A stretch of DNA of 64,000 bases, taken from the NCBI GenBank assembly GCA_965644295.1, contig CBFFRP010000358.1, positions 62,001-126,000 of the forward strand, in the 5' to 3' direction. A model generated the notes under the pieces. It was not told where the DNA came from. It was given only the letters and a program-made list of their open reading frames with translations, and did no database searches. Source of the DNA: Paraphysomonas bandaiensis (lineage: Eukaryota > Protista > Chrysophyceae). Below are positions 18,692-31,027 of this stretch, piece after piece; the stretch's first letter is position 1; every line of letters begins with the position of its first letter. The position numbers and the translations under genes were made by a program.

Positions 18692-20391
18692 ATGCATGCT
18701 ATCAGTAATAGCGATGACATTGACGAGCTAACCGATACACCAAAGAGTGTTCAAGATGCTCTTTCAGGTAAATATAAACAGCAGTGGATCGATGCTATCA
18801 ACAGAGAAATATCCACTCTTCAGAGGAAAGGATGCTGGAGATACACTGCGTTGTTACCACCTGGAGCAAGAGCCATAAAGGGGAAACTCATATTCAAAAT
18901 AAAAAGAAAACAGAATGATATCAAATTCAAGGCTCGACTGGTCGCACAGGGTTTTACTTAAATCCAAGGCATCGATTATAATGATACATACAGCCCCGTC
19001 GCGAAGGCTACATCACTACGTACAATTAGTGCCCTTTCGACTATTATGAGACTCAAATTGCACCAAATCGATTTCACAACTGCGTACATCAATGCTGACC
19101 TCGAAGAGGACATATACATGCATCCCCCTCCTGGCATGGACGTCCCTGACGGAAAAGTCCTCAAACTGATGAAAAACATCTATGGTCTAAAGCAAGCAGG
19201 TCTTAACTGGTATAAGTGCTGTACAAATTTTATGCTAGATATGGGTTTCACCAGACTAATATCTGACCCGTGTATATATTCAAAAAGCAGATTAAGGGCA
19301 GGATTATGCTAATAGCCATGTATGTGGATGATATTATTATAGCATCTACATCCGACACTGATATCCAACAATTCAAAGACCATTTATCCAAAAAGTTCGA
19401 TATTACGGATCTCGGACTCTTAGATTATTATTACTTGGGGATTTCCATCCATCAAGACTTTGATAAGAATATCACGACTCTCAGTCAGGAGCAGTATGTC
19501 AACAAACTACTGGACAAATTCAATATGTCCAACTGTAAACTCATGTCAACACCTATGTTACTTTCCTTCAACTATGATTTACATGAATACAATCATCTTT
19601 CAGAGTCAAATCAAAGCTATGTTCAGAATTTCCCCTACAAGGAGGTCATAGGTTCCCTGATGTATCTAGCTGTATGCACTCGACCGGATATCGCCTACGC
19701 AGTCAATACTCTTGCCAGATTTTCTGATATGCCTAATCTAACTACCTGTAATGCTGCGTTACATGTTCTTAGGTATCTCAAAGGCACTGCTAAGCAAGGA
19801 TTGATATATTCTGGATCCCACATAACATTGTCAGGATACTGCGATAGCGATTGGGCACGATGTCACCTCACTCGACGGTCCACTACAGCTTTTACATTCT
19901 TCATAGGTAATTGTCTTATATCATGGCAATCTTGATTACAGACAACTGTGGCATTGTCATCTACTGAAGCTGAGTATATGGCATTAACGTCAGCAGCTCA
20001 GGAAGCATTATGGCTACGCTCTTTATTATCAGAAATTGGTTTCAAACTTCCATTCTCAACAACTATTGGGTGCGATAATAAAGGTGCAGTCCGATTATGT
20101 TACAATCCTACTCATCATCGACGTACAAAACATATCGAGATTCGATATCACTTCATCCGTGAACACATTGCGGAGAACATTTTGACTGTGGATCATATAT
20201 CCACAAAGTCAATGTTAGCCGACCTCCTTACGAAACCACTAGGAGCAAATAACTTCCGCACATTGCGAACTACATTGATGGGGGGAGCAGGGTTCGACAT
20301 CCCATCCAGCAACAACAGAAAGCGATCAACAACCTCAGAGACACCTAAATCACAATTACCAAGCCACAAGCGACCTAGGTGGCTAGTTTGA
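18692..20391 (+). pseudogene. 5'-truncated Copia RT-RNase H (second family), with stops and a frameshift
   Basis: FKARLVAQGF, IYGLKQAG, YVDD, TRPDIAYAV, YCDSDWA, SSTEAEY, RTKHIEIRYHF; TAA at 18959-18961, frameshift near 19280, TGA at 19933-19935. Confidence 0.93.
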
Positions 20392-20590
20392 GTTACACGG
20401 AGTTTTTACCATTTTTTTTTACTTTTATTAATACATGATGCTGGACTAGAAGAATAGTCTCACAATATGGCATCTCTGCAGTTCGCTTATTATTGACTAG
20501 TGACTGCTACTCTGGTTTTTACTCTCAGTGTGCATAAGTTCATATTCTCTCTATTATCTACGGTTCACTGATTATTTCGTTGAGGGGGCG

Positions 20591-20876
20591 TATTAGGATT
20601 CAGCTTAATACATGATTGTATCTGTGAGTTATAATGTTCAATGAAATATACCATGAACTGAATTAGAGAGAGTATCTGTCGAAGATACGTGATCGTCATC
20701 ATAACGTCGTCATTATCAGTTACACTTCTAACTATTCCGTTATGCATGATAGCTACGTTCTATATTGTTATTCAAAATTTTCACTCTATCGTGTTCATTA
20801 CTTACACTCTAATAATCACAACATTGTTTTACTATTATAAAGATCAATTCTTTATTTATATTAAGAACTTGTAATA
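20591..20876 (+). mobile_element. Putative 3' LTR of the 18.7-kb Copia with TATTA...TAATA ends
   Basis: Directly follows the PPT-like tgagggggcg (20581-20590); 5-bp inverted termini; no partner LTR in the window. Confidence 0.45.
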
Positions 20877-20973
20877 TTGATTTGGCGTGAGTGATGCGGA
20901 TTATATAGTAATAAGTGTAAGTGCATGCAATGCTATATCAATACAATGATGGCATGCAGTGCAAGGTGCAGTG

Positions 20974-21258
20974 TGCCCCATTCTGAGCGCGTACTTAGGT
21001 AGATCCAGGTGGGGGCCGGGTGGGTGCCTAACTAATACTTGATTTAAGTCCCATACGTTATTTGCTAGCTACCTACTGAACCCAACTAGCTACATCATTA
21101 TCACACGGTATTCAGCGCTGAATATGCAGTGAGAACCCAGAGCGGGGAACTGCTGAACTAAGCAATGTGTATATAGGTAGAGGCGAGCAATCGCAGCACT
21201 CGGCAGCACCCACTAGAGGGCCGCACGCAGTAATTAGTTACGCTGTCAATATGGGGCA
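20974..21258 (+). mobile_element. 285-bp MITE (TG...CA family), left copy
   Basis: Imperfect TIR tgccccattctgagcgcgta / reverse complement tgccccatattgacagcgta (16/20). Confidence 0.75.
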
Positions 21259-22084
21259 GTCCTCTACATATTGGCACCACCTCGTCGATGAACTCTTCAC
21301 TCTTAGCCTTGTGGTCTTTGCTTCCACACTGAAAACACCCTATATATGCTTCTGAACCCACTTGCTGTGCTTCTTTCCTCTGCTGTAGTCATCTCATTTC
21401 GCTTGAACTGCTTCACACGACATACACATACATGCAGTATGCAGTATAAGCAGTTGACATTCTCTACACCTTCTTGTTTGTCTAGCTATCACTTAGTTTC
21501 ATCGAATTCTTCATACGCATCTTTGATAATCTGATATGTAGTCGTTGCTTTAGTATGCAGCATTGGGCGGTATAGCTAACCATCACACACAACTCCTTCA
21601 GCTCTGGAGCAGGGGGTGGTTCATTGAAAATCATCATTTTACACAACTCCAGATCTCCAGACATCCATCTCAAAGATGAGAACAACCGCTATCTGTTCGA
21701 AGCTTGATTCCTCATTTCGATCAGTGGATGCTAACCGAAGCAACGAACCACAATACTATTAATAGTAAGATATGCTCACTCCATCATACTGTACTGCTGA
21801 GTACTGCTATATTACATGCAGCAGTACACACACTCCTATGTACAGCAGTACAAACACACTCATGTCATGTACACATCATCTCATATATAAAAATGGGGTT
21901 TTTACGGAACTAAAAACTGAGGGCGTCGTGGTGCCCGTCCCTCAGGGACGGGGTGGCAGTATTATATGAGGGACGGGCCCTCCCCTTCGGGGACGGCCAA
22001 ATCAATTTTTCATTAAAAAGACACTTTTTCACTTTTCACTAATAAAAAAACGATGACTTTTCAATGAATAACAACCACCCCCTG

Positions 22085-22101
22085 TATGTATGTACAGTAT
22101 G

Positions 22102-22133
<32 letters not shown>

Positions 22134-22263
22134 TGTATGTATGTATGTATGTATGTATGTATGTATGTATGTATGTATGTATGTATGTATGTATGTATGT
22201 ATGTAGGTATGTATGTATGTATGTATGTATGTATGTATGTATGCATGTATGTATGTATGTATG
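22085..22263. repeat. (TATG)n microsatellite at the inner end of the left arm
   Basis: Tetranucleotide array with a few variant units. Confidence 0.97.
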
Positions 22264-22309
22264 TTCACTAATAGAAAAACCATGACTTTTCAATGAATAA
22301 AATCCCTTG

Positions 22310-23623
22310 GCGATGTTGCTTTCCATTTGGCCTATCAATACCAATAGCGACCTTTTCATTGGGTCTAATTTGAAAAAATGGGTATTTCCTAACTCACTTC
22401 TCAACCTATCCATAAGAGTTGGAAGCATTTCATTGGACAAAACTTCCTTGTAGGGATCATCAGCTGTTGTCCTACGCTTCGCTTCCATGCATGCATGTAG
22501 ATTGGCAACCTTGGTATACATCTGCGTCATGTTCATAAGCCTCCCAAATCGTTGCTGCCCCATTCTGAGGGCGTACCCTAGTGAAGTACTAGTGTTGACT
22601 AAGCTAAGTAACGTATAGATTGTTAATAAATCTCAACGCATTCTTTGTGATCTACACTATACGTATACTTGCATAGCCTATATGAGATTACGAGAAACCC
22701 CGCGCATTCTAGGGGAGGGAGGGGGGCGGCCAATGTCACACTAGACCTATACTGAGCCATGCATGGTCACGAGAAGCTCGGCGTAATCTTTGTTAGGTAA
22801 TAATGGGAAGGTACACATGGTCCTACTAGAATCTGCGCGAATTACATAAAAGTCATGCATAGTCATGCATAGTTATGAGAAGTCCCGCGTAATCTCAGCA
22901 AAGGTTAACACAGGTGGGAGGGGCAACAGAATATGCGCGTGATCTATGTGTCTATGTGGTCAGCTACATTGGTACACGGGTGGGTGGGTAGTAGAATCAG
23001 TGCTATATCTCGGTGTTTTAGGTGGTGTGCAGCCAGCCTACACTATGGCAACGCCCTCGGAATGGGGCAGTTGCAACACAAGTATCATTTTGCTCATGTC
23101 ATAATTCTCGTGCTCTACCACCTTCAGCAGGTTTTGGCTCTAGCCCCAATTGATTTCGATTCTTCTTGATCAGATGGATCCTTATCTTCTCAGCTGATAC
23201 CTCAGCCTCCTCCTTGACAAACTTCAGCACCTTGTTCTCCTTCCCTCATCAGAGCTACCACACGCTACCATATGTTAGAATTAGACATTTCACTGAAGTT
23301 AACTTTGCTCTACACGTAAACCTTAAGCTTGCTTTGTTGCACACAATGCACTTTCAAGTAAGAAATTATAATTATTAATCTGAACACTTCACTACGTATT
23401 CAGCCGCATCTGTTTATCATATGTTCATCAGTCTATCTTATATAGTCACACATCAGTAACTGAATTCAATTCCTTTGTAACTATAACCACCCGTATTAAC
23501 TCACTTCAATTGCAAATTATTTCACATCATATTGCAGAGCTCAACATTCTTTGAGTAACGGTTATAATTCAAATATCATTGAAACTACAGCTTTTAATTG
23601 CTCACAAACAGCAAAACTCAACA
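22310..23623 (-). mobile_element. Truncated Copia: 5' LTR (23273-23623), PBS-like tggtagc, decayed gag interrupted by a MITE
   Basis: Reverse complement LTR tgttgagttttgctgtttgtgagc...tctaaca; gag-like KNRNQLGLE...DTCVATIWEA reads across the MITE insertion site. Confidence 0.8.
22556..23069. mobile_element. 514-bp MITE with TGCCCCATTC TIRs and perfect 5-bp TSD GTTGC
   Basis: tgccccattctgagggcgt / acgccctcggaatggggca; gttgc at 22551-22555 and 23070-23074; removal restores the gag frame. Confidence 0.88.
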
Positions 23624-23871
23624 GAATCACGTACCAAAAGATTTGGCTGCATCTAATTATAAACAACAAGAATCTAGCTAGTACAATGGGACAGCACACA
23701 ACTGAGAAACGCACAGGTGGTTCAAACCAACAAGCGGCTAACAGTTAGTAGGTTGTTCAGTTTCTTAATTAGCAACAAAAGCAAGATATTATGCCATACT
23801 GCAGATACAAAAATTCAGAAATTCAAAACAACTGAATAGCACAATTGACGTTTTCCGTCAGACAAGTTGTA

Positions 23872-26091
23872 TCAATTCGGTGATTGCAATACATTTTTGG
23901 TTTCTGGCGAAGAAAAAACATCAAGTTTTAAATCGACTGGCCCTTGTGATAGAGATGATTTGTGACCACGGTATCGGCAGCAATATGCACAACATCCACA
24001 CACGCCGCAACAACCCGCAATTGCGATGAAAACAAAGACAATCACCCAGGCAGCCTTCATTTCGGTTTTGCAATAGCGTACGTGACCTTCAATCTTAATG
24101 AAACAGTTGTAGAGATCTTCGTTTGCCCCACAGTTTTCGTCATCATCATAATTAGGATCATTCGTGCCATAATCGTCGCATACACACATATCGCACTTAA
24201 TATACTTTCCCTCATCGTTTGAAGCATCATGAAAACAATCTGTAGCAGGACCACACATAGAGTCGTACATACTGGTTGGAGCTGCAGTTGGAGTTCTCGT
24301 AGAGGATAAGGTGTAACGCACATACAGGCTGCTGCCTTCATACGCACAGAATGTTCCCACATCACTCGTGCCAATTACCTCAACCTGAAGATTGCCGTTG
24401 ATATCAACCAGTTGATCAATTTCTAATTGTCGAAAACACTTGTAGAAAGCTTCTCCACAAGCATCGTCAGGGTTACACACACCATAACCCACTCCATTGA
24501 CGGTAACATTTGCGTACTCATCAGACCCATCAAAATCTGTAGGAAACACCTCCACAGTAAGATATTTAGGGTGGGTTGCGTCAACTGCAGTAAATGTATA
24601 TTTCACTCCTTCATCAGCATCAGCTGTTCCTCCTTCAAATTCCTGTATCAATACGGTAGGTGATAGAGAGGTAATAACATGGGTTGGATAATGAGTAGGA
24701 TCATTTGTAGGAGTTGTGGTAGGCGAATAGGTGGGTGGATTCGTTACTCCAGTTGCTGTCGGAGATTGGGTGGAAGCAATTGTTGGAGTTGTAGTGGGCA
24801 ATAGAGTAGGCGCATTGGTTGGGGTAGATGTAGGAGCATGGGTGGGGGTAGAAGTAAGTGGTGGTGTATTAGCATTCGTAGGAGTCGTGGTAGGCGATTG
24901 GGTGGAAGCGAATGTTGGAGTTGTAGTGGGCAATAGAGTAGGCGCATTGGTTGGGGTAGATGTAGGAGCATGGGTGGGGGTAGAAGTATGTGGTGGTGTA
25001 TTACTATACCATCGGATGCTGTCGTCTCCATAAGAAGCAGACAGAATATCAATTGTGGAGTCACCATTAATATCAACAGCATACACAGAACGCACTGAGG
25101 AAGCACTTGAAGTTATAGTGTGAGGTGTGAATGATTGAAAACCATTATTCTCATACCACACAACTGAATTCAAGTCTCTCAGAGCAGACACTACATCCAT
25201 ATCACCATCACCATCAATATCAGATGCATACACGGAATATGCACCATCAGCAGACGACTGTATGGTATGTGCTGTGAATGATTGAAAACCATTGTTCTCA
25301 TACCAGACCACTTTATTTACATCGTATGATGCAGATAATACGTCAATGTCGCCATCATTGTCCATATCAATAGCATAGACAGCACCAACTGCGCTGCTCG
25401 ATATTATATGATATTCAAAATTTTCAGAACCATCATTCTCATGCCAGTGAAGACCATCACTAAGACTGTAGGCAGATAGTATATCCATGTCACCATCACC
25501 ATCCATATCAATAGCATACACAGCTCTGGCACTATTAAGTGTATTCGCTATCCTATGTGACGTGAAACTCTGCAATCCGTTATTCTCATACCAATTAATT
25601 TCCCCGTCATACTCTCCAGCAGAAAGAACGTCAATGTCTCCATCGTTATCTATGTCAATGGCAAACACCGAGCGCGGCCCATTGGACCAGGTTTCAATTA
25701 AATGCCGCGTAAACGCCTGAGCTCCATCATTCTCAAACCAATAGATCTCATCGCCTGTATATGCAGTAGCAAGAACGTCAATGTCATTATCTCCATCCAT
25801 GTCTATAGCAAACACACAGCTTGCACCCCTGACAGTTGTGGATATGTCATGCACCATAAAGCCACCCACTCCATTGTTCTCATACCACGCTATCCTGTCA
25901 TCATGTTGGGATGCAGACAGGACATCTATATCTCCATCACCATCCATATCGATTGCAAACACTGATTCGGCTCCATCTGCAGCGGAGGATATCGTATGAG
26001 GGTTGAAAGACGCAGCATAGCATTGGCTTGTGTACAATGCATGAAGAGTAAGCACAATGAGCTGTTGCATCTGGGACAACTGGAGTAACAT
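23872..26091 (-). CDS. Type-I membrane protein: signal peptide, 7 FG-GAP/VCBS-type repeats (beta-propeller), P/T stalk, Cys-rich domain, TM, Cys-rich tail; intronless, about 739 aa
   Basis: Seven DxDGDGDxD-type loops with WYEN motifs; TPTNAPT repeats with an internal duplication; TM AWVIVFVFIAIAG. The ORF-track N-terminal MYVC run is microsatellite; real start is ATG 26091 or 26070. Confidence 0.85.
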   Translation of the reverse strand: MLLQLSQMQQLIVLTLHALYTSQCYAASFNPHTISSAADGAESVFAIDMDGDGDIDVLSASQHDDRIAWYENNGVGGFMVHDISTTVRGASCVFAIDMDGDNDIDVLATAYTGDEIYWFENDGAQAFTRHLIETWSNGPRSVFAIDIDNDGDIDVLSAGEYDGEINWYENNGLQSFTSHRIANTLNSARAVYAIDMDGDGDMDILSAYSLSDGLHWHENDGSENFEYHIISSSAVGAVYAIDMDNDGDIDVLSASYDVNKVVWYENNGFQSFTAHTIQSSADGAYSVYASDIDGDGDMDVVSALRDLNSVVWYENNGFQSFTPHTITSSASSVRSVYAVDINGDSTIDILSASYGDDSIRWYSNTPPHTSTPTHAPTSTPTNAPTLLPTTTPTFASTQSPTTTPTNANTPPLTSTPTHAPTSTPTNAPTLLPTTTPTIASTQSPTATGVTNPPTYSPTTTPTNDPTHYPTHVITSLSPTVLIQEFEGGTADADEGVKYTFTAVDATHPKYLTVEVFPTDFDGSDEYANVTVNGVGYGVCNPDDACGEAFYKCFRQLEIDQLVDINGNLQVEVIGTSDVGTFCAYEGSSLYVRYTLSSTRTPTAAPTSMYDSMCGPATDCFHDASNDEGKYIKCDMCVCDDYGTNDPNYDDDENCGANEDLYNCFIKIEGHVRYCKTEMKAAWVIVFVFIAIAGCCGVCGCCAYCCRYRGHKSSLSQGPVDLKLDVFSSPETKNVLQSPN

Positions 26092-26231
26092 TGCAGTTAT
26101 ATTCAAGGGTTTGAGAGATAGACTTAAGTGAGCATGCTGAATGCCGCGAATATACATACACATGTACATATATACCCAAATAGGTCGAATATTAGGACAT
26201 AGACCACACAAAAGAAAATTCTTCAACACGG

Positions 26232-26556
26232 ATACATACATACATACATACATACATACATACATACATACATACATACATACATACATAAATACATACA
26301 TACATACATACATACATACATACATACATACATACATACATACATACATACATACATACATACATACATACATACATACATACATACATACATACATACA
26401 TACATACATACATACATACATACATACATACATACATACATACATACATACATACATACATACATACATACATACATACATACATACATACATACATACA
26501 TACATACCTACATACATATACACCTACATACATACCTACATACATACATACATACA

Positions 26557-26588
<32 letters not shown>

Positions 26589-26667
26589 CATACTGTACAT
26601 ACATACATACATACATACATACATACATACATACATACATACATACATACATACATACATACATACA

Positions 26668-26697
<30 letters not shown>
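26232..26697. repeat. (CATA)n microsatellite, continued at 29216-29294 after the Ginger insertion
   Basis: Long TACA array about 140 bp upstream of the FG-GAP ATG. Confidence 0.97.
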
Positions 26698-26698
<1 letters not shown>

Positions 26699-29215
26699 GT
26701 TACGACCCGTGAGAAAAATGTGCCAGTCGATGAACTGTTCATCGACTGGCAGTTTTTGACTATCACTCAAAAACCCACCAAGAAAGTGAACCCGTCAGTG
26801 AAGTGGCTTATCCAGCCGTGTTTTTTTTCATTCCACCCACATACCATCGTAAGATATCGTAGTTGATGATTATCGCTCAATGCAACAGCATGATAGTAAT
26901 ATAAGTGCTACATATATCATTGTATCAAACAAGAAGGAATGATATCGGTGGTTAAAACTGTCTCATCAGGAGCACTGTACGACCAGAAGTTGCATCGTCA
27001 GTAGACGACAACACTAGATCTATCACTGATTCCATTAAAATTGAAGAACACAAACGACTGTTCTATCTGAATGCACAAAATGCTTTCGCAAATTCAATTA
27101 TTCAACTATGAATAATGTTATCGAGGGCCATGAACCAGAGGAATGTACAGTTGTGGCTTCAGCGAATGAGTCTGTTGCAGTATTGGTAAATGAGCACGGT
27201 GATACTCCATCAAGAGGGGCGAAAAGTAAAGCAGTGAGTGCCGCACTAGCTGAACAAGGCGAAAGGATGAAAAGATTTTCCACGTCTGGCACTCCAACCG
27301 ATGAGGCGGAACTCCTACAGGTGGGTAGTGTTGTTTTAGTCAAACCACATCAGGTGGACCGAGGACAAGTTGATGAAATCAGGTTTCCAGCTGTTGTTGT
27401 TGAGGTTACCCCCAATGAATTACTTCGTCTGTACGCTCCCAGGGGAGTTTTAAACTCGTGTTATAACCGATCAGATCTGATTCACGAGCCGAATAAGACC
27501 CCTGCTTCATACCAACGTCATCTTGGAAACTATGAGAACTGGAGAAATTCGAAGACTATATCAGAGAGAGAAACTGCAACTATGTTTTCTCCATCCTTTG
27601 GACAGGGGTTTAGTAATTGTAGTTGCAAGGGTAAGTGCAACAGTAATAAATGTGTGTGCAAGAAGAATGGATTTCTCTGTAACTAGGTGCCACAAAAGCA
27701 ATTTGCTTGCGTATTGTAACAAGTAGTTGGTGCCATAGTAAACTACAGACTACTACTTAACTGAGTAGAAAAACAACCTTAACAAGTAACATGAATCTTA
27801 TTTGGTACTGGTTGCATGAATCTTATTAGCAACTAGTGATATATAAATCGCTATTTATTAACATCATCAGTACATCAGCTCTAAGTATTTTAGTAGCTAT
27901 TTACCTTAATATTGTGTCCACTGTCTGCAGATGATGATGATATACTGTCTGCAGATGATATATGTAATGAATAGAGTGTAGAAAGCCTATCACATAATAG
28001 TCATATTATTGAGTAGATCTTCATTCATATAGAGTCGATATTCATAATAATTGTACATATTCAAACATGGAATATGTACAAGCGAAAGCATATACAATAG
28101 AGAGCTCATAGTATAAAGTAACCCGATAGCTGGTTACTACAAGTAACATGAATATTATTTGCTACTAGTGATATAAACTAACATCACTAGTACATCAGTT
28201 ATAACTAATGTAATCAGTTGTTATCGTACAGCCTATAAGGAGTATCCGCTGTCATCATATATGTAACGAATATAGAGTATCATCTGTACAATAGTACTGC
28301 ATTAATTAAAAACATCAGTATATCAGTTATAAGTAATTTAGTCACTATTTACCTTGTTATCGTGTCCACTGTATGGGGAAGTGGACCAACTAATGTCCCC
28401 CAGGGACACAGCACTCTGCAGTTGATGTAACGCACATACTGGAAGAATTCCTCACCACGGGTTAATGGCACCGTCGAAGATCCGATGCGAACTTACTCAC
28501 AGACATTGGTCCAAAGCTAGGAGATATTACAGACCCCAACCACCAATGGGACCTACATCAATACATCCTCAGGCGAGACAGCACGTACGCTACACAAACG
28601 CAGCGAGACCCGCAGTATTGGACCCGCAGTGGAACGAGGCTCCCACACAAACTCCATCCAATCCGCACCCATAACTCCCCTAACACTACATCTCTTTCCC
28701 AGACCGCATACGCGAAACGGTATACGTCTGGAACAAATTCTATGCAATGGGAAGAAATCGAGTCAAAAGCAAAACCGGGATTGACCAGACAACAGCTGCC
28801 GCATGCATAGACTGTAGAATCACCAATCAGAGAATATGACAAACCAAGTTAGTAAGACTATAGATATATACATAGCTTCTAGTCACAACCGTTCCCATGT
28901 AAAAATAAGATATTCTTATGTCTTATCCATGCTCTCATGAAGAAGGAAGTAGCACTGAAGAGGGATACAGATATCTATCTTGATACTGAAGGCTGGTAGG
29001 CTGGAATAGCATCTTGTGGGCTAATAATCAGGAGCTCTTATGATCATAGTTATGAGATGCTGTCTGCTGATATCATACGCTGGGTATCCGAGTGGACTTG
29101 CTGTATACTTGACTGTATTTCCCGTATATCGTTTCCTTTCAACATCATCAAACCAGTCGATGAACTGGCAGGTGCCAGTTCATCGACTGGTTTATTTTTC
29201 TCACGGGTTGTAACA
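26698..29215 (+). mobile_element. Ginger-like (integrase-type) DNA transposon, non-autonomous deletion derivative
   Basis: TIR tgttacgacccgtgagaaaaat / atttttctcacgggttgtaaca (1 mismatch); TGT...ACA termini; flanked by cata on both sides; internal transposase C-terminal remnant. Confidence 0.8.
27108..27726 (+). pseudogene. Ginger2/KRBA2-like transposase C-terminal region (no DDE core seen; frameshift near 27683)
   Basis: VGSVVLV...VDRG...VVVEV...GVLN..YNR and GQGFSNCSCKGKCNSNKCVCKKNGFLCN/TRCH...CNK, the Cys-rich tail typical of this group. Confidence 0.7.
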
Positions 29216-29245
29216 CATACATACATACATACATACATACATACA

Positions 29246-29277
<32 letters not shown>

Positions 29278-30120
29278 CATACTGTACATACATACAGGGG
29301 GTGGTTGTTATTCATTGAAAAGTCATCGTTTTTTTATTAGTGAAAAGTGAAAAAGTGTCTTTTTAATGAAAAATTGATTTGGCCGTCCCCGAAGGGGAGG
29401 GCCCGTCCCTCATATAATACTGCCACCCCGTCCCTGAGGGACGGGCACCACGACGCCCTCAGTTTTTAGTTCCGTAAAAACCCCATTTTTATATATGAGA
29501 TGATGTGTACATGACATGAGTGTGTTTGTACTGCTGTACATAGGAGTGTGTGTACTGCTGCATGTAATATAGCAGTACTCAGCAGTACAGTATGATGGAG
29601 TGAGCATATCTTACTATTAATAGTATTGTGGTTCGTTGCTTCGGTTAGCATCCACTGATCGAAATGAGGAATCAAGCTTCGAACAGATAGCGGTTGTTCT
29701 CATCTTTGAGATGGATGTCTGGAGATCTGGAGTTGTGTAAAATGATGATTTTCAATGAACCACCCCCTGCTCCAGAGCTGAAGGAGTTGTGTGTGATGGT
29801 TAGCTATACCGCCCAATGCTGCATACTAAAGCAACGACTACATATCAGATTATCAAAGATGCGTATGAAGAATTCGATGAAACTAAGTGATAGCTAGACA
29901 AACAAGAAGGTGTAGAGAATGTCAACTGCTTATACTGCATACTGCATGTATGTGTATGTCGTGTGAAGCAGTTCAAGCGAAATGAGATGACTACAGCAGA
30001 GGAAAGAAGCACAGCAAGTGGGTTCAGAAGCATATATAGGGTGTTTTCAGTGTGGAAGCAAAGACCACAAGGCTAAGAGTGAAGAGTTCATCGACGAGGT
30101 GGTGCCAATATGTAGAGGAC

Positions 30121-30405
30121 TGCCCCATATTGACAGCGTAACTAATTACTGCGTGCGGCCCTCTAGTGGGTACTGCCGAGTGCTGCGATTGCTCGCCTCT
30201 ACCTATGTACACATTGCTTAGTTCAGCAGTTCCCCACTCTGGGTTCTCACTGCATATTCAGCGCTGAATACCGTGTGATAATGATGTAGCTAGTAGGGTT
30301 CAGTAGGTAGCTAGCAAATAACGTATGGGACTTAAATCAAGTATTAGTTAGGTACCCACCCGACCCCCACCTGTATCTACCTAAGTACGCGCTCAGAATG
30401 GGGCA
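30121..30405 (-). mobile_element. 285-bp MITE, right copy (inverted)
   Basis: Reverse complement of 20974-21258 with about 7 substitutions. Confidence 0.75.
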
Positions 30406-31027
30406 CAGTGTAGTGTACATGCAAGCATACATGTAATAATAATATACACAATAGATATCACTAGTGAGGTTCTCACTCGTCCTGATGTAGCCATACAAGT
30501 ATCCAACCATAGTTAGCAATCGCACAATAATCCCCAGACAGTAGATAGCCAGATCTTTATCACGGGAGTAATAGTTTAACGCCACAGCGTTACACTACCA
30601 TATCCCACTCCTCTTACGTAACTGCTAAAGAACAGTTGTAGCACGGCTGCACACTGTGAGATACCTGTAAAATATTCAATAGAAAAAATCGGTTGAACAC
30701 ACCAGAAACCAAGGTAATAAGAATTTCAAGGCATCAAGAACTTCAAATGTTGTACATGAATTTTCCCAAGCAAGGGAGTAGCTAGTACCTCTCGGAACGG
30801 GGGGTATATTTCAATGGGGGCAATTAAATTAGTTTTCTCTGTTACTTAAACACATGTGAAGCTTATGTAAGTAACACTACAATTAAGTACACCATACACC
30901 TCATAAAGTACAAAATATATGCTTCAAGAGGCAAATATTATATCACATCAGTATTCGAAATATCGGACTACGAGAAGGGTTTGTTGAACAAACTTCAAAT
31001 AATTGCACTAACTACAATCTATTTCAC

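Follow-up and report, generated by a model that had tools for sequence, protein, structure and literature searches.

In Drosophila, foldback (FB) elements mediate the movement of 'transposing elements', in which host genes are carried between long inverted terminal structures. In maize, alternative transposition of Ac/fAc accompanied by re-replication generates so-called Composite Insertions (Zhang et al. 2014, PMC4270019), and a Tam3L macro-transposon created the White Cap (Wc) locus, the same paper also describing a composite with two 'left' termini (10.1101/082677). Bacterial composites bounded by MITEs (miniature inverted-repeat transposable elements) are represented by the TIME-COMPs (PMC4133298) and by a MITE pair around blaPER-1 (PMC3934969). 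Here, we describe a unit resembling these systems in the chrysophyte Paraphysomonas bandaiensis, a marine flagellate. It is located in a stretch of 64,000 nucleotides (assembly GCA_965644295.1, contig CBFFRP010000358.1, positions 62,001 to 126,000 of the forward strand), which we call the window and whose numbering is used throughout. The unit (20974-30405; 9,432 bp) carries an intact gene for an FG-GAP membrane protein between two inverted copies of a 285-bp element, termed M. It entered an older repeat of a family termed T as one piece and with a 5-bp target-site duplication. For the origin of this piece, which we infer, we see about an even chance that it is a composite insertion derived from a single donor M whose same outer end was used twice. 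The locus is a new example, in a new lineage, of a kind already known from maize and bacteria, and does not introduce a new principle.

The integration can be read from the flanks of the unit. The pentamer CAGTG is present directly outside of it at 20969-20973 and at 30406-30410, as reported in a preliminary description of this DNA, and neither of the M copies has matching flanks of its own, the inner flank being GTCCT at both. The preliminary description had also expressed the worry that the surroundings are somewhat rich in CAGTG, which would weaken the evidence for a duplication. This worry is answered by the sequence into which the unit is inserted. T is a moderately repeated family, and a copy of it covers about 90 bp to the left and 247 bp to the right of the unit. 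Within its left half (20883-20968), 20887-20966 matches at least 20 loci at 85-92% identity, in which the sequence located past 30410 in the window comes next after 7 nt, and the second part of the interrupted copy is found at 30411-30657. In 17 of the 18 loci in which both halves were found they are exactly 7 nt apart, and a pattern search identified 19 uninterrupted T copies with the sequence CATGCAGTGCAAGG-CA-TAGTG-TAGTGTACATGC or near variants of it. The copies without insert have a single YAGTG at this position and read ...CAAGG-CA-TAGTG-TAGTGTAC..., with 7 nt between the halves. The version in the window reads ...AAGG-TG-CAGTG-(9,432 bp)-CAGTG-TAGTGTAC..., which corresponds to the insert and one extra 5-mer, so that the halves are separated by 7 nt plus 9,432 bp plus 5 nt. 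Both 5-mers of the window contain a C that is absent from the T consensus, and therefore they are copies of the local target. Because the flanks of the unit are the two halves of one repeat, which is contiguous in 19 paralogues, the unit constitutes a single insertion.

M is non-coding and has TG..CA ends with imperfect terminal inverted repeats (TIRs; TGCCCCAT...ATGGGGCA), of which 8 nucleotides are perfect and about 16 of 22 match overall. At least 232 candidate copies are present in the genome. M thus combines the characteristics of a MITE, namely short length, absence of coding sequence, high copy number, TIRs, and target-site duplication, and behaves as a miniature non-autonomous element. 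The left copy (20974-21258, forward strand) and the right copy (30121-30405, reverse strand) are sister copies, which are inverted relative to each other and both point TGCCCCATTCTGAG outward. They are 97.5% identical, corresponding to 7 differences, and each contains private derived states. The left copy is 100% identical to an M at the end of another contig, C149. Among the 26 M copies that were fetched together with their flanks, three have a 5-bp duplication of their own. A solo sibling element of 514 bp with the same termini as M is located inside the unit (22556-23069, forward strand) and has GTTGC on both sides. Copies of the Copia-like family E are contiguous across the site of this sibling with an overlap of 5 nt, the four aligned copies representing empty sites. 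The earlier statement that the sibling reveals 5-bp duplications for this type of terminus is therefore correct, and because three solo M copies show the same as the sibling with its GTTGC flanks and empty sites, the M family makes 5-bp duplications, although in most cases they do not surround a lone copy. The family of the sibling comprises at least 279 candidate copies, and close pairs also occur.

The preliminary description had depicted the unit as bounded by two inverted 285-bp MITEs presenting the same end outward. The positions and the orientation are right, but the repeat is considerably longer than the MITE. According to both a repeat finder and pairwise alignment, the inverted repeat comprises 1,191 bp per arm (20974-22164 versus 29215-30405). 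Each arm consists of M and about 0.9 kb of adjoining DNA, termed A, and ends in a tetranucleotide array. In the left arm, A (21259-22082) contains the start of a Copia-like relic (21260-21609) and nested older repeats, and is followed by a (TATG)n array (22083-22264), in which the homology to the right arm ends. In the right arm, the corresponding interior A' (29297-30120) is the reverse complement of 21259-22082 without any mismatch, and a (CATA)n array (29216-29296) forms the inner end. Of the mismatches between the arms, 7 are found within M and none in the next about 900 bp.

The DNA between the arms reveals what had been next to M before. The relic continues at 22265-22555 and, beyond the sibling, with the gag-side part of family E at 23070-23546 (reverse strand), which adjoins the 3' end of the FG-GAP gene. 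The segments 21260-21609, 22323-22555, and 23070-23546 are colinear and derive from the same relic of family E, for which an intact frame with rve and SH3_retrovirus domains is found in locus L051. Because the arm interior and the 3' flank of the gene belong to one colinear relic, they must have been neighbours before any M event. In each of the 13 E copies that were examined, family E runs on past the position of M. Neither arm has this continuation, its place being taken by T sequence; the outer flank of M has been exchanged. Upstream of the gene there is an (ACAT)n array of about 470 bp (26230-26697), to which the arm arrays are reverse-complementary. It is followed by R (26698-29215), a nested TIR transposon of 2.5 kb. 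As R is a multi-copy TIR element inside the array, the right arm once abutted the array of the gene itself, and until R arrived, the (CATA)n array that closes the right arm on its inner side formed one stretch with 26230-26697. R arrived later, and the unit had a length of about 6.9 kb when it landed.

A search for a donor locus or for further copies of the interior, as recommended in the preliminary description, retrieved a colinear paralogue among ordinary host genes. The last 5.3 kb of contig C149 are colinear with 20986-26462 of the window, comprising M, A, the array, the relic, and the gene, and the relic of C149 contains the same sibling insertion with the same flank. The homology stops in the upstream array, past which C149 continues with host genes encoding a silicon transporter, an NSUN5-like methyltransferase, an XPD-like helicase, and CFA20. 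No second M was found within 40 kb at this locus, the contig ending 12 bp inside its one M. The identity between C149 and the window is patchy, with 100% in M and A, 80-87% in the relic, and about 95% in the gene.

The single-donor origin is favoured because there is one M at C149, because the arms consist of M and donor flank, because the same end is outermost on both sides, and because the joint is located in inverted microsatellites. The donor would have been a C149-like locus with a single M in a Copia relic beside the FG-GAP gene. The outer end of this M would have been used twice, the ends of the two sister chromatids being paired. In an alternative route, a strand with a break in (ACAT)n could have folded back on the inverted (TATG)n 4 kb away and copied to the cut M end, in which case the relic and the gene would have formed the fold-back loop. 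Either route would result in the order M-A-array-relic-gene-array-A'-M', with the joint hidden in the microsatellite and the donor keeping its own copy. In a single integration, as the flanks show, two copies of the same M terminus were joined to a staggered 5-bp cut in the T repeat, and the outcome would be a dispersed duplicate of an intact gene. R entered the array subsequently, and conversion events that began at the fragile arrays and ran outward over variable lengths would have kept the arm interiors identical. In the preliminary description, the outer ends of two MITEs were proposed to have been used together in trans to move the gene. The single piece, the 5-bp duplication, the intact non-transposon gene, and the paralogue of this gene among ordinary genes elsewhere agree with this proposal, but the ends would not stem from two separate MITEs. 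The analogy to a bacterial composite with two insertion sequences (IS-X-IS) is not supported, given that the arms are a 1.2-kb inverted duplication, that C149 has one M, and that the inner joint of the right arm, with the later R taken away, is located in the upstream microsatellite of the gene.

The same data need to be considered under the assumption of a classical composite (macro)transposon, in which the gene was already enclosed at the donor by two inverted sister M copies, whose outer ends took part together in a cut-and-paste event. The identical 0.9-kb arm interiors would then result from a later conversion tract extending from M to the microsatellite. The private derived bases in both M copies are as in copies that have been separate for some time, and with 0 compared to 7 differences the arm interiors are of a younger age than M itself. 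Elsewhere in the genome M is also found in direct pairs with outer duplications (see below), and the Wc macro-transposon of maize provides a precedent (10.1101/082677). However, C149 as the sole donor-like locus has a single M, and the position of the inner end of the right arm within the upstream array of the gene, as seen with R removed, is left unexplained. In addition, M would have had to insert beside an inverted array, and 0.9 kb would have had to be converted without prior homology between M and array. We therefore regard a classical composite as unlikely.

A further scenario separates the insertion from the acquisition of the gene. A palindrome with M ends (M-A-array-A'-M') might have inserted first, and the relic and the gene might have been filled in later by gap repair from a C149-like template, so that the gene would have been copied by recombination and not transposed. 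Such a palindrome without cargo does exist on contig C210, both ends of the gene segment are located in arrays able to anneal, and C149 and the left arm exchange sequence, as shown by their 100% identical M and A. It is, however, hard to reconcile with the finding that A and the 3' flank of the gene are parts of one colinear relic and hence of an ancestral block. The sequence 22265-22486 between the array and the relic is absent from C149, and the divergence is uneven along the supposed tract. Filling-in of a palindrome would accordingly come as a surprise to us.

Several observations speak against the composite insertion from a single donor M. A simultaneous duplication of M and A predicts about 22 differences in A, in which 0 are seen compared to 7 in M. 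Such a duplication without later conversion is ruled out by these numbers, and therefore a later gene conversion must be invoked. M and A of C149 are 100% identical to the left arm despite a dS (synonymous divergence) of 0.076 for the gene and a spacer that differs by 13-20%. Either another conversion would be needed to account for this identity, or the last 1.3 kb of C149 would represent an assembly overhang joined via the microsatellite. The outer flank of M on the donor side could not be recovered, as neither GTCCT joined to M nor the upstream part of the Copia relic joined to M occurs in the assembly. On C210 and C620, where the M pairs are inverted, there is no outer duplication. A transposase bounded by M-like termini was found neither in the window nor in 74 fetched loci; M-like termini do not bracket any coding region in the window or in these loci, in agreement with the earlier statement that the unit contains no intact transposase. 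All empty sites found, the 19 T copies, are paralogous, and a pattern across the reconstructed site matched only a paralogue on C503 in the assembly. The suggested check for an empty allele has thus provided paralogous empty sites but no allelic one in the assembly. Finally, the one short-read contig spanning the right junction has a G at 30406, where the assembly has the C of CAGTG. This G could be a heterozygous base, the result of a hemizygous insertion, or an assembly error.

The reads of all runs were available as short-read contigs, which break at M, and in runs X5 and X6 the depth of the unique flank was too low for calls of presence or absence. The contig crossing the right junction between M' and the flank belongs to run X1. 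Its depth is 17.9 compared to 31.5 in the adjoining unique contig (0.57x), and the arm interior has a depth of 1.6-1.8x that of the unique flank in two runs. These depths fit a hemizygous insertion together with a real C149 copy. They are explained just as well if the insertion is homozygous, 30406 is heterozygous, and a C149 copy does not exist. Loose ends resembling T (run X1 at 30404, run X6 at 30411) were considered as traces of an empty allele and discarded, because they look like paralogous T copies. The read contigs also bear on the question of whether the unit is an assembly artefact, or whether the flanks match by chance in a rearranged region. In favour of an artefact there are three 100% identical 1.2-kb segments, one of which is located at a contig end and stops inside M, indel errors of the assembly (4 gaps over 1,055 nt when compared with short-read contigs), and the disagreement at 30406. 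However, a mis-join would not generate an exact duplication of 5 bp where 19 paralogues are uninterrupted, an independent contig spans the junction of M' and the flank, and the 7 differences between the M copies show that they are not one collapsed sequence. An artefact is therefore highly improbable.

M also bounds other units in the genome. Direct M pairs sharing an outer 5-mer were found on C77 (5.1 kb, TCACG), C297 (3.7 kb, GTAAG), and C362 (2.4 kb, CCCCA). The members of M pairs are sisters, being 98-100% identical compared to a family mean of 94.5%. The interiors of these three units share nothing with one another, and neither a reverse transcriptase nor an integrase nor a transposase is encoded inside the units with direct pairs. 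The units on C77 (227082-232173), C430, and C6 have at least 1.2 kb beside the 3' M in common (86-93%), and this cargo unit seems to have been multiplied. In the interior of the C77 unit, one open reading frame (ORF) encodes an F5/8 type C domain and another a Cys-rich protein with a hydrophobic tail.

Because of the direct pairs it has to be asked whether M could be the long terminal repeat (LTR) of a non-autonomous retroelement, the unit in the window being an aberrant cDNA that was integrated by an integrase. The TG..CA ends together with the 5-bp duplication, and the direct sister copies with outer duplications on C77, C297, and C362, would be expected of LTRs, and the purine-rich sequence GGGTGGGGGG is found ahead of three 3' copies whose upstream DNA is shared over at least 1.2 kb. 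The M pair of the window, however, is inverted. A primer-binding site was not found beside the 5' M copies of the direct pairs, no tRNA-complementary sequence of the TGG type following any 5' copy, and the 3' copies of C297 and C362 are not preceded by a polypurine tract. Moreover, the interiors of the units are unrelated and encode neither reverse transcriptase nor integrase, and the DNA beside M in the window is the interior of another retroelement. Taking both sides together, an LTR origin of M is very unlikely.

An inverted arrangement similar to that of the window is present on C210 (3092-5753), where an inverted M pair bounds a near-perfect palindrome of 2,662 bp with arms of 1,303 bp (1 mismatch) and a loop of 58 bp. 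It looks like the product of the same process as proposed for the composite insertion, with a loop of 58 nt. The cargo of this palindrome has a 98% identical copy at C338 (236587-237466) with no M beside it, and this copy speaks neither for nor against the model of a single-M donor. It lies 170 bp from an element of the sibling family. It is possible, although we would not rely on it, that this small TG..CA family generates and mobilises cargo units as a matter of routine, the end of one element being used twice. Under such a routine process, use of the same end would lead to inverted arms and use of opposite ends to direct pairs. If true, the genome would contain a standing natural engine for dispersed whole-gene duplication, with the FG-GAP copy and the C77/C430/C6 unit as its products.

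The cargo gene of the unit, gene F (23872-26091, reverse strand), encodes a protein of 739 amino acids. The reading frame does not contain any internal stop and matches the Pfam family PF13517 (E 2.8e-59) in 7 stretches, which confirms the previously noted uninterrupted FG-GAP membrane-protein gene. After an N-terminal hydrophobic leader, the protein has seven FG-GAP/VCBS repeats, followed by one C-terminal transmembrane segment, and thus the layout of a type I membrane protein. It is 92.8% identical to the protein of the C149 paralogue (dS 0.076, dN/dS 0.49), the two gene copies being distinguished by 99 nucleotide differences. Another paralogue (C68:102202-104999) is 86-92% identical and has an open frame of 678 amino acids, in which about 97 residues are lacking, and its 3' flank is the same Copia relic at 81%. 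A third paralogue (C66:364347-365915) is 62-77% identical and contains stop codons. The exact product of gene F was not found in other records, and a protein search revealed distant FG-GAP proteins, of which the best full-length match is 56% identical. The transposition may be a route for the expansion of surface-protein genes, as had been suggested. This is supported in part, in that two to three further paralogues exist.

Compared to the described systems, the unit shares with the maize Composite Insertions the outward termini around copied donor flank, the single duplication of family-specific length, the copy kept at the donor, and an internal joint that arose from the repair of a break, in some cases via repeats. 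The maize elements, however, are hAT transposons with 8-bp duplications, and the event was observed, whereas here a 285-bp TG..CA element with 5-bp duplications is concerned and the event is deduced from one genome. In addition, the same end appears twice here, resulting in the 1.2-kb inverted repeat. As in the Tam3L/Wc case, intact host genes were moved between elements that do not have duplications of their own but a matching outer duplication. There, however, the elements are two full-length hAT elements of the autonomous type and the donor is known, as opposed to the miniature ends, the one-copy donor, and the long inverted arms of the present unit. In the bacterial MITE composites a pair of miniature elements likewise mobilises the intervening DNA in trans with a single flanking duplication, but these elements are derived from Tn3 or IS, and there is no sign of a related enzyme here. 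In the FB elements of Drosophila the arms are internal tandem repeats of the element, whereas here they are donor-flank DNA, namely the Copia relic. The unit is also different from Pack-MULEs, which have long TIRs of the Mutator type and carry gene fragments, in having a 5-bp instead of a 9-11-bp duplication and a complete gene with its flanks as cargo. The TG..CA ends and the 5-bp duplication of M recall enzymes of the integrase type, which we mention only as a lead. Ginger2/Tdd transposons and other integrase-like DDE elements have TG..CA termini, and TDD-4/5 generate 5-bp duplications (PMC2836005). Ginger termini are TGTNR compared to TGCCC in M, and an integrase-type transposase with M-like ends was not found.

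Retroposition, or segmental duplication that is left unexplained, is the usual account of dispersed duplicates of intact genes. In the present case such a duplicate can be followed back, base by base, to an insertion of the transposition type through 19 paralogous empty sites, a donor-like locus, and a visible joint. If the other M units are of the same kind, they would provide a natural system for alternative transposition, which so far has been documented mainly in maize genetics, and would offer a concrete way in which the surface-protein genes of a heterotrophic stramenopile may turn over.

The interior of the unit does not consist solely of ordinary host DNA, as it had appeared in the preliminary description, since 26698-29215 is the nested transposon R. 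R has TIRs with the sequence GTTACRACCCGTGAGAAAAAT, and at least 10 other copies with inverted ends were found at 94-100% identity. Its flanks CATACATA/CATACATA would be compatible with a duplication of 8 bp, which carries no information within a repeat of 4 bp. R is non-coding and has inverted ends of about 60 bp with internal palindromes, and no Pfam domains were detected in its ORFs. One copy, on C352, is split by a 7-kb insertion. The possibility that R is the Copia relic was rejected, the latter being the family E sequence at 21260-23546. A nested repeat of 387 bp (28430-28815) with at least 20 copies at 82% is carried by R.

The arrays and the target contain some further peculiarities. 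A 42-nt direct repeat with 90% identity (22035-22076 and 22264-22305) brackets the (TATG)n array of the left arm, and the array together with one of the 42-nt copies looks like an insertion or a duplication within the Copia relic. The variant motif CATATACATACTGTACATACATACA, which marks the arm-proximal end of the array at 29272-29296, recurs at 26583-26607 in the upstream array of the gene. This second occurrence may go back to an unequal exchange or to the joint as first made. The T copies are often paired at a distance of 2.0-2.6 kb in direct or inverted orientation (for example C238:21927/24505, C503:100/2709, C424:25623/27542). T therefore probably forms the terminal repeats of a small element and is not free-standing. 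To the left of the T copy, 18864-20856 is a very high-copy repeat with more than 500 candidate loci at 96-98% identity, which does not belong to family E and stops about 27 bp before the T copy.

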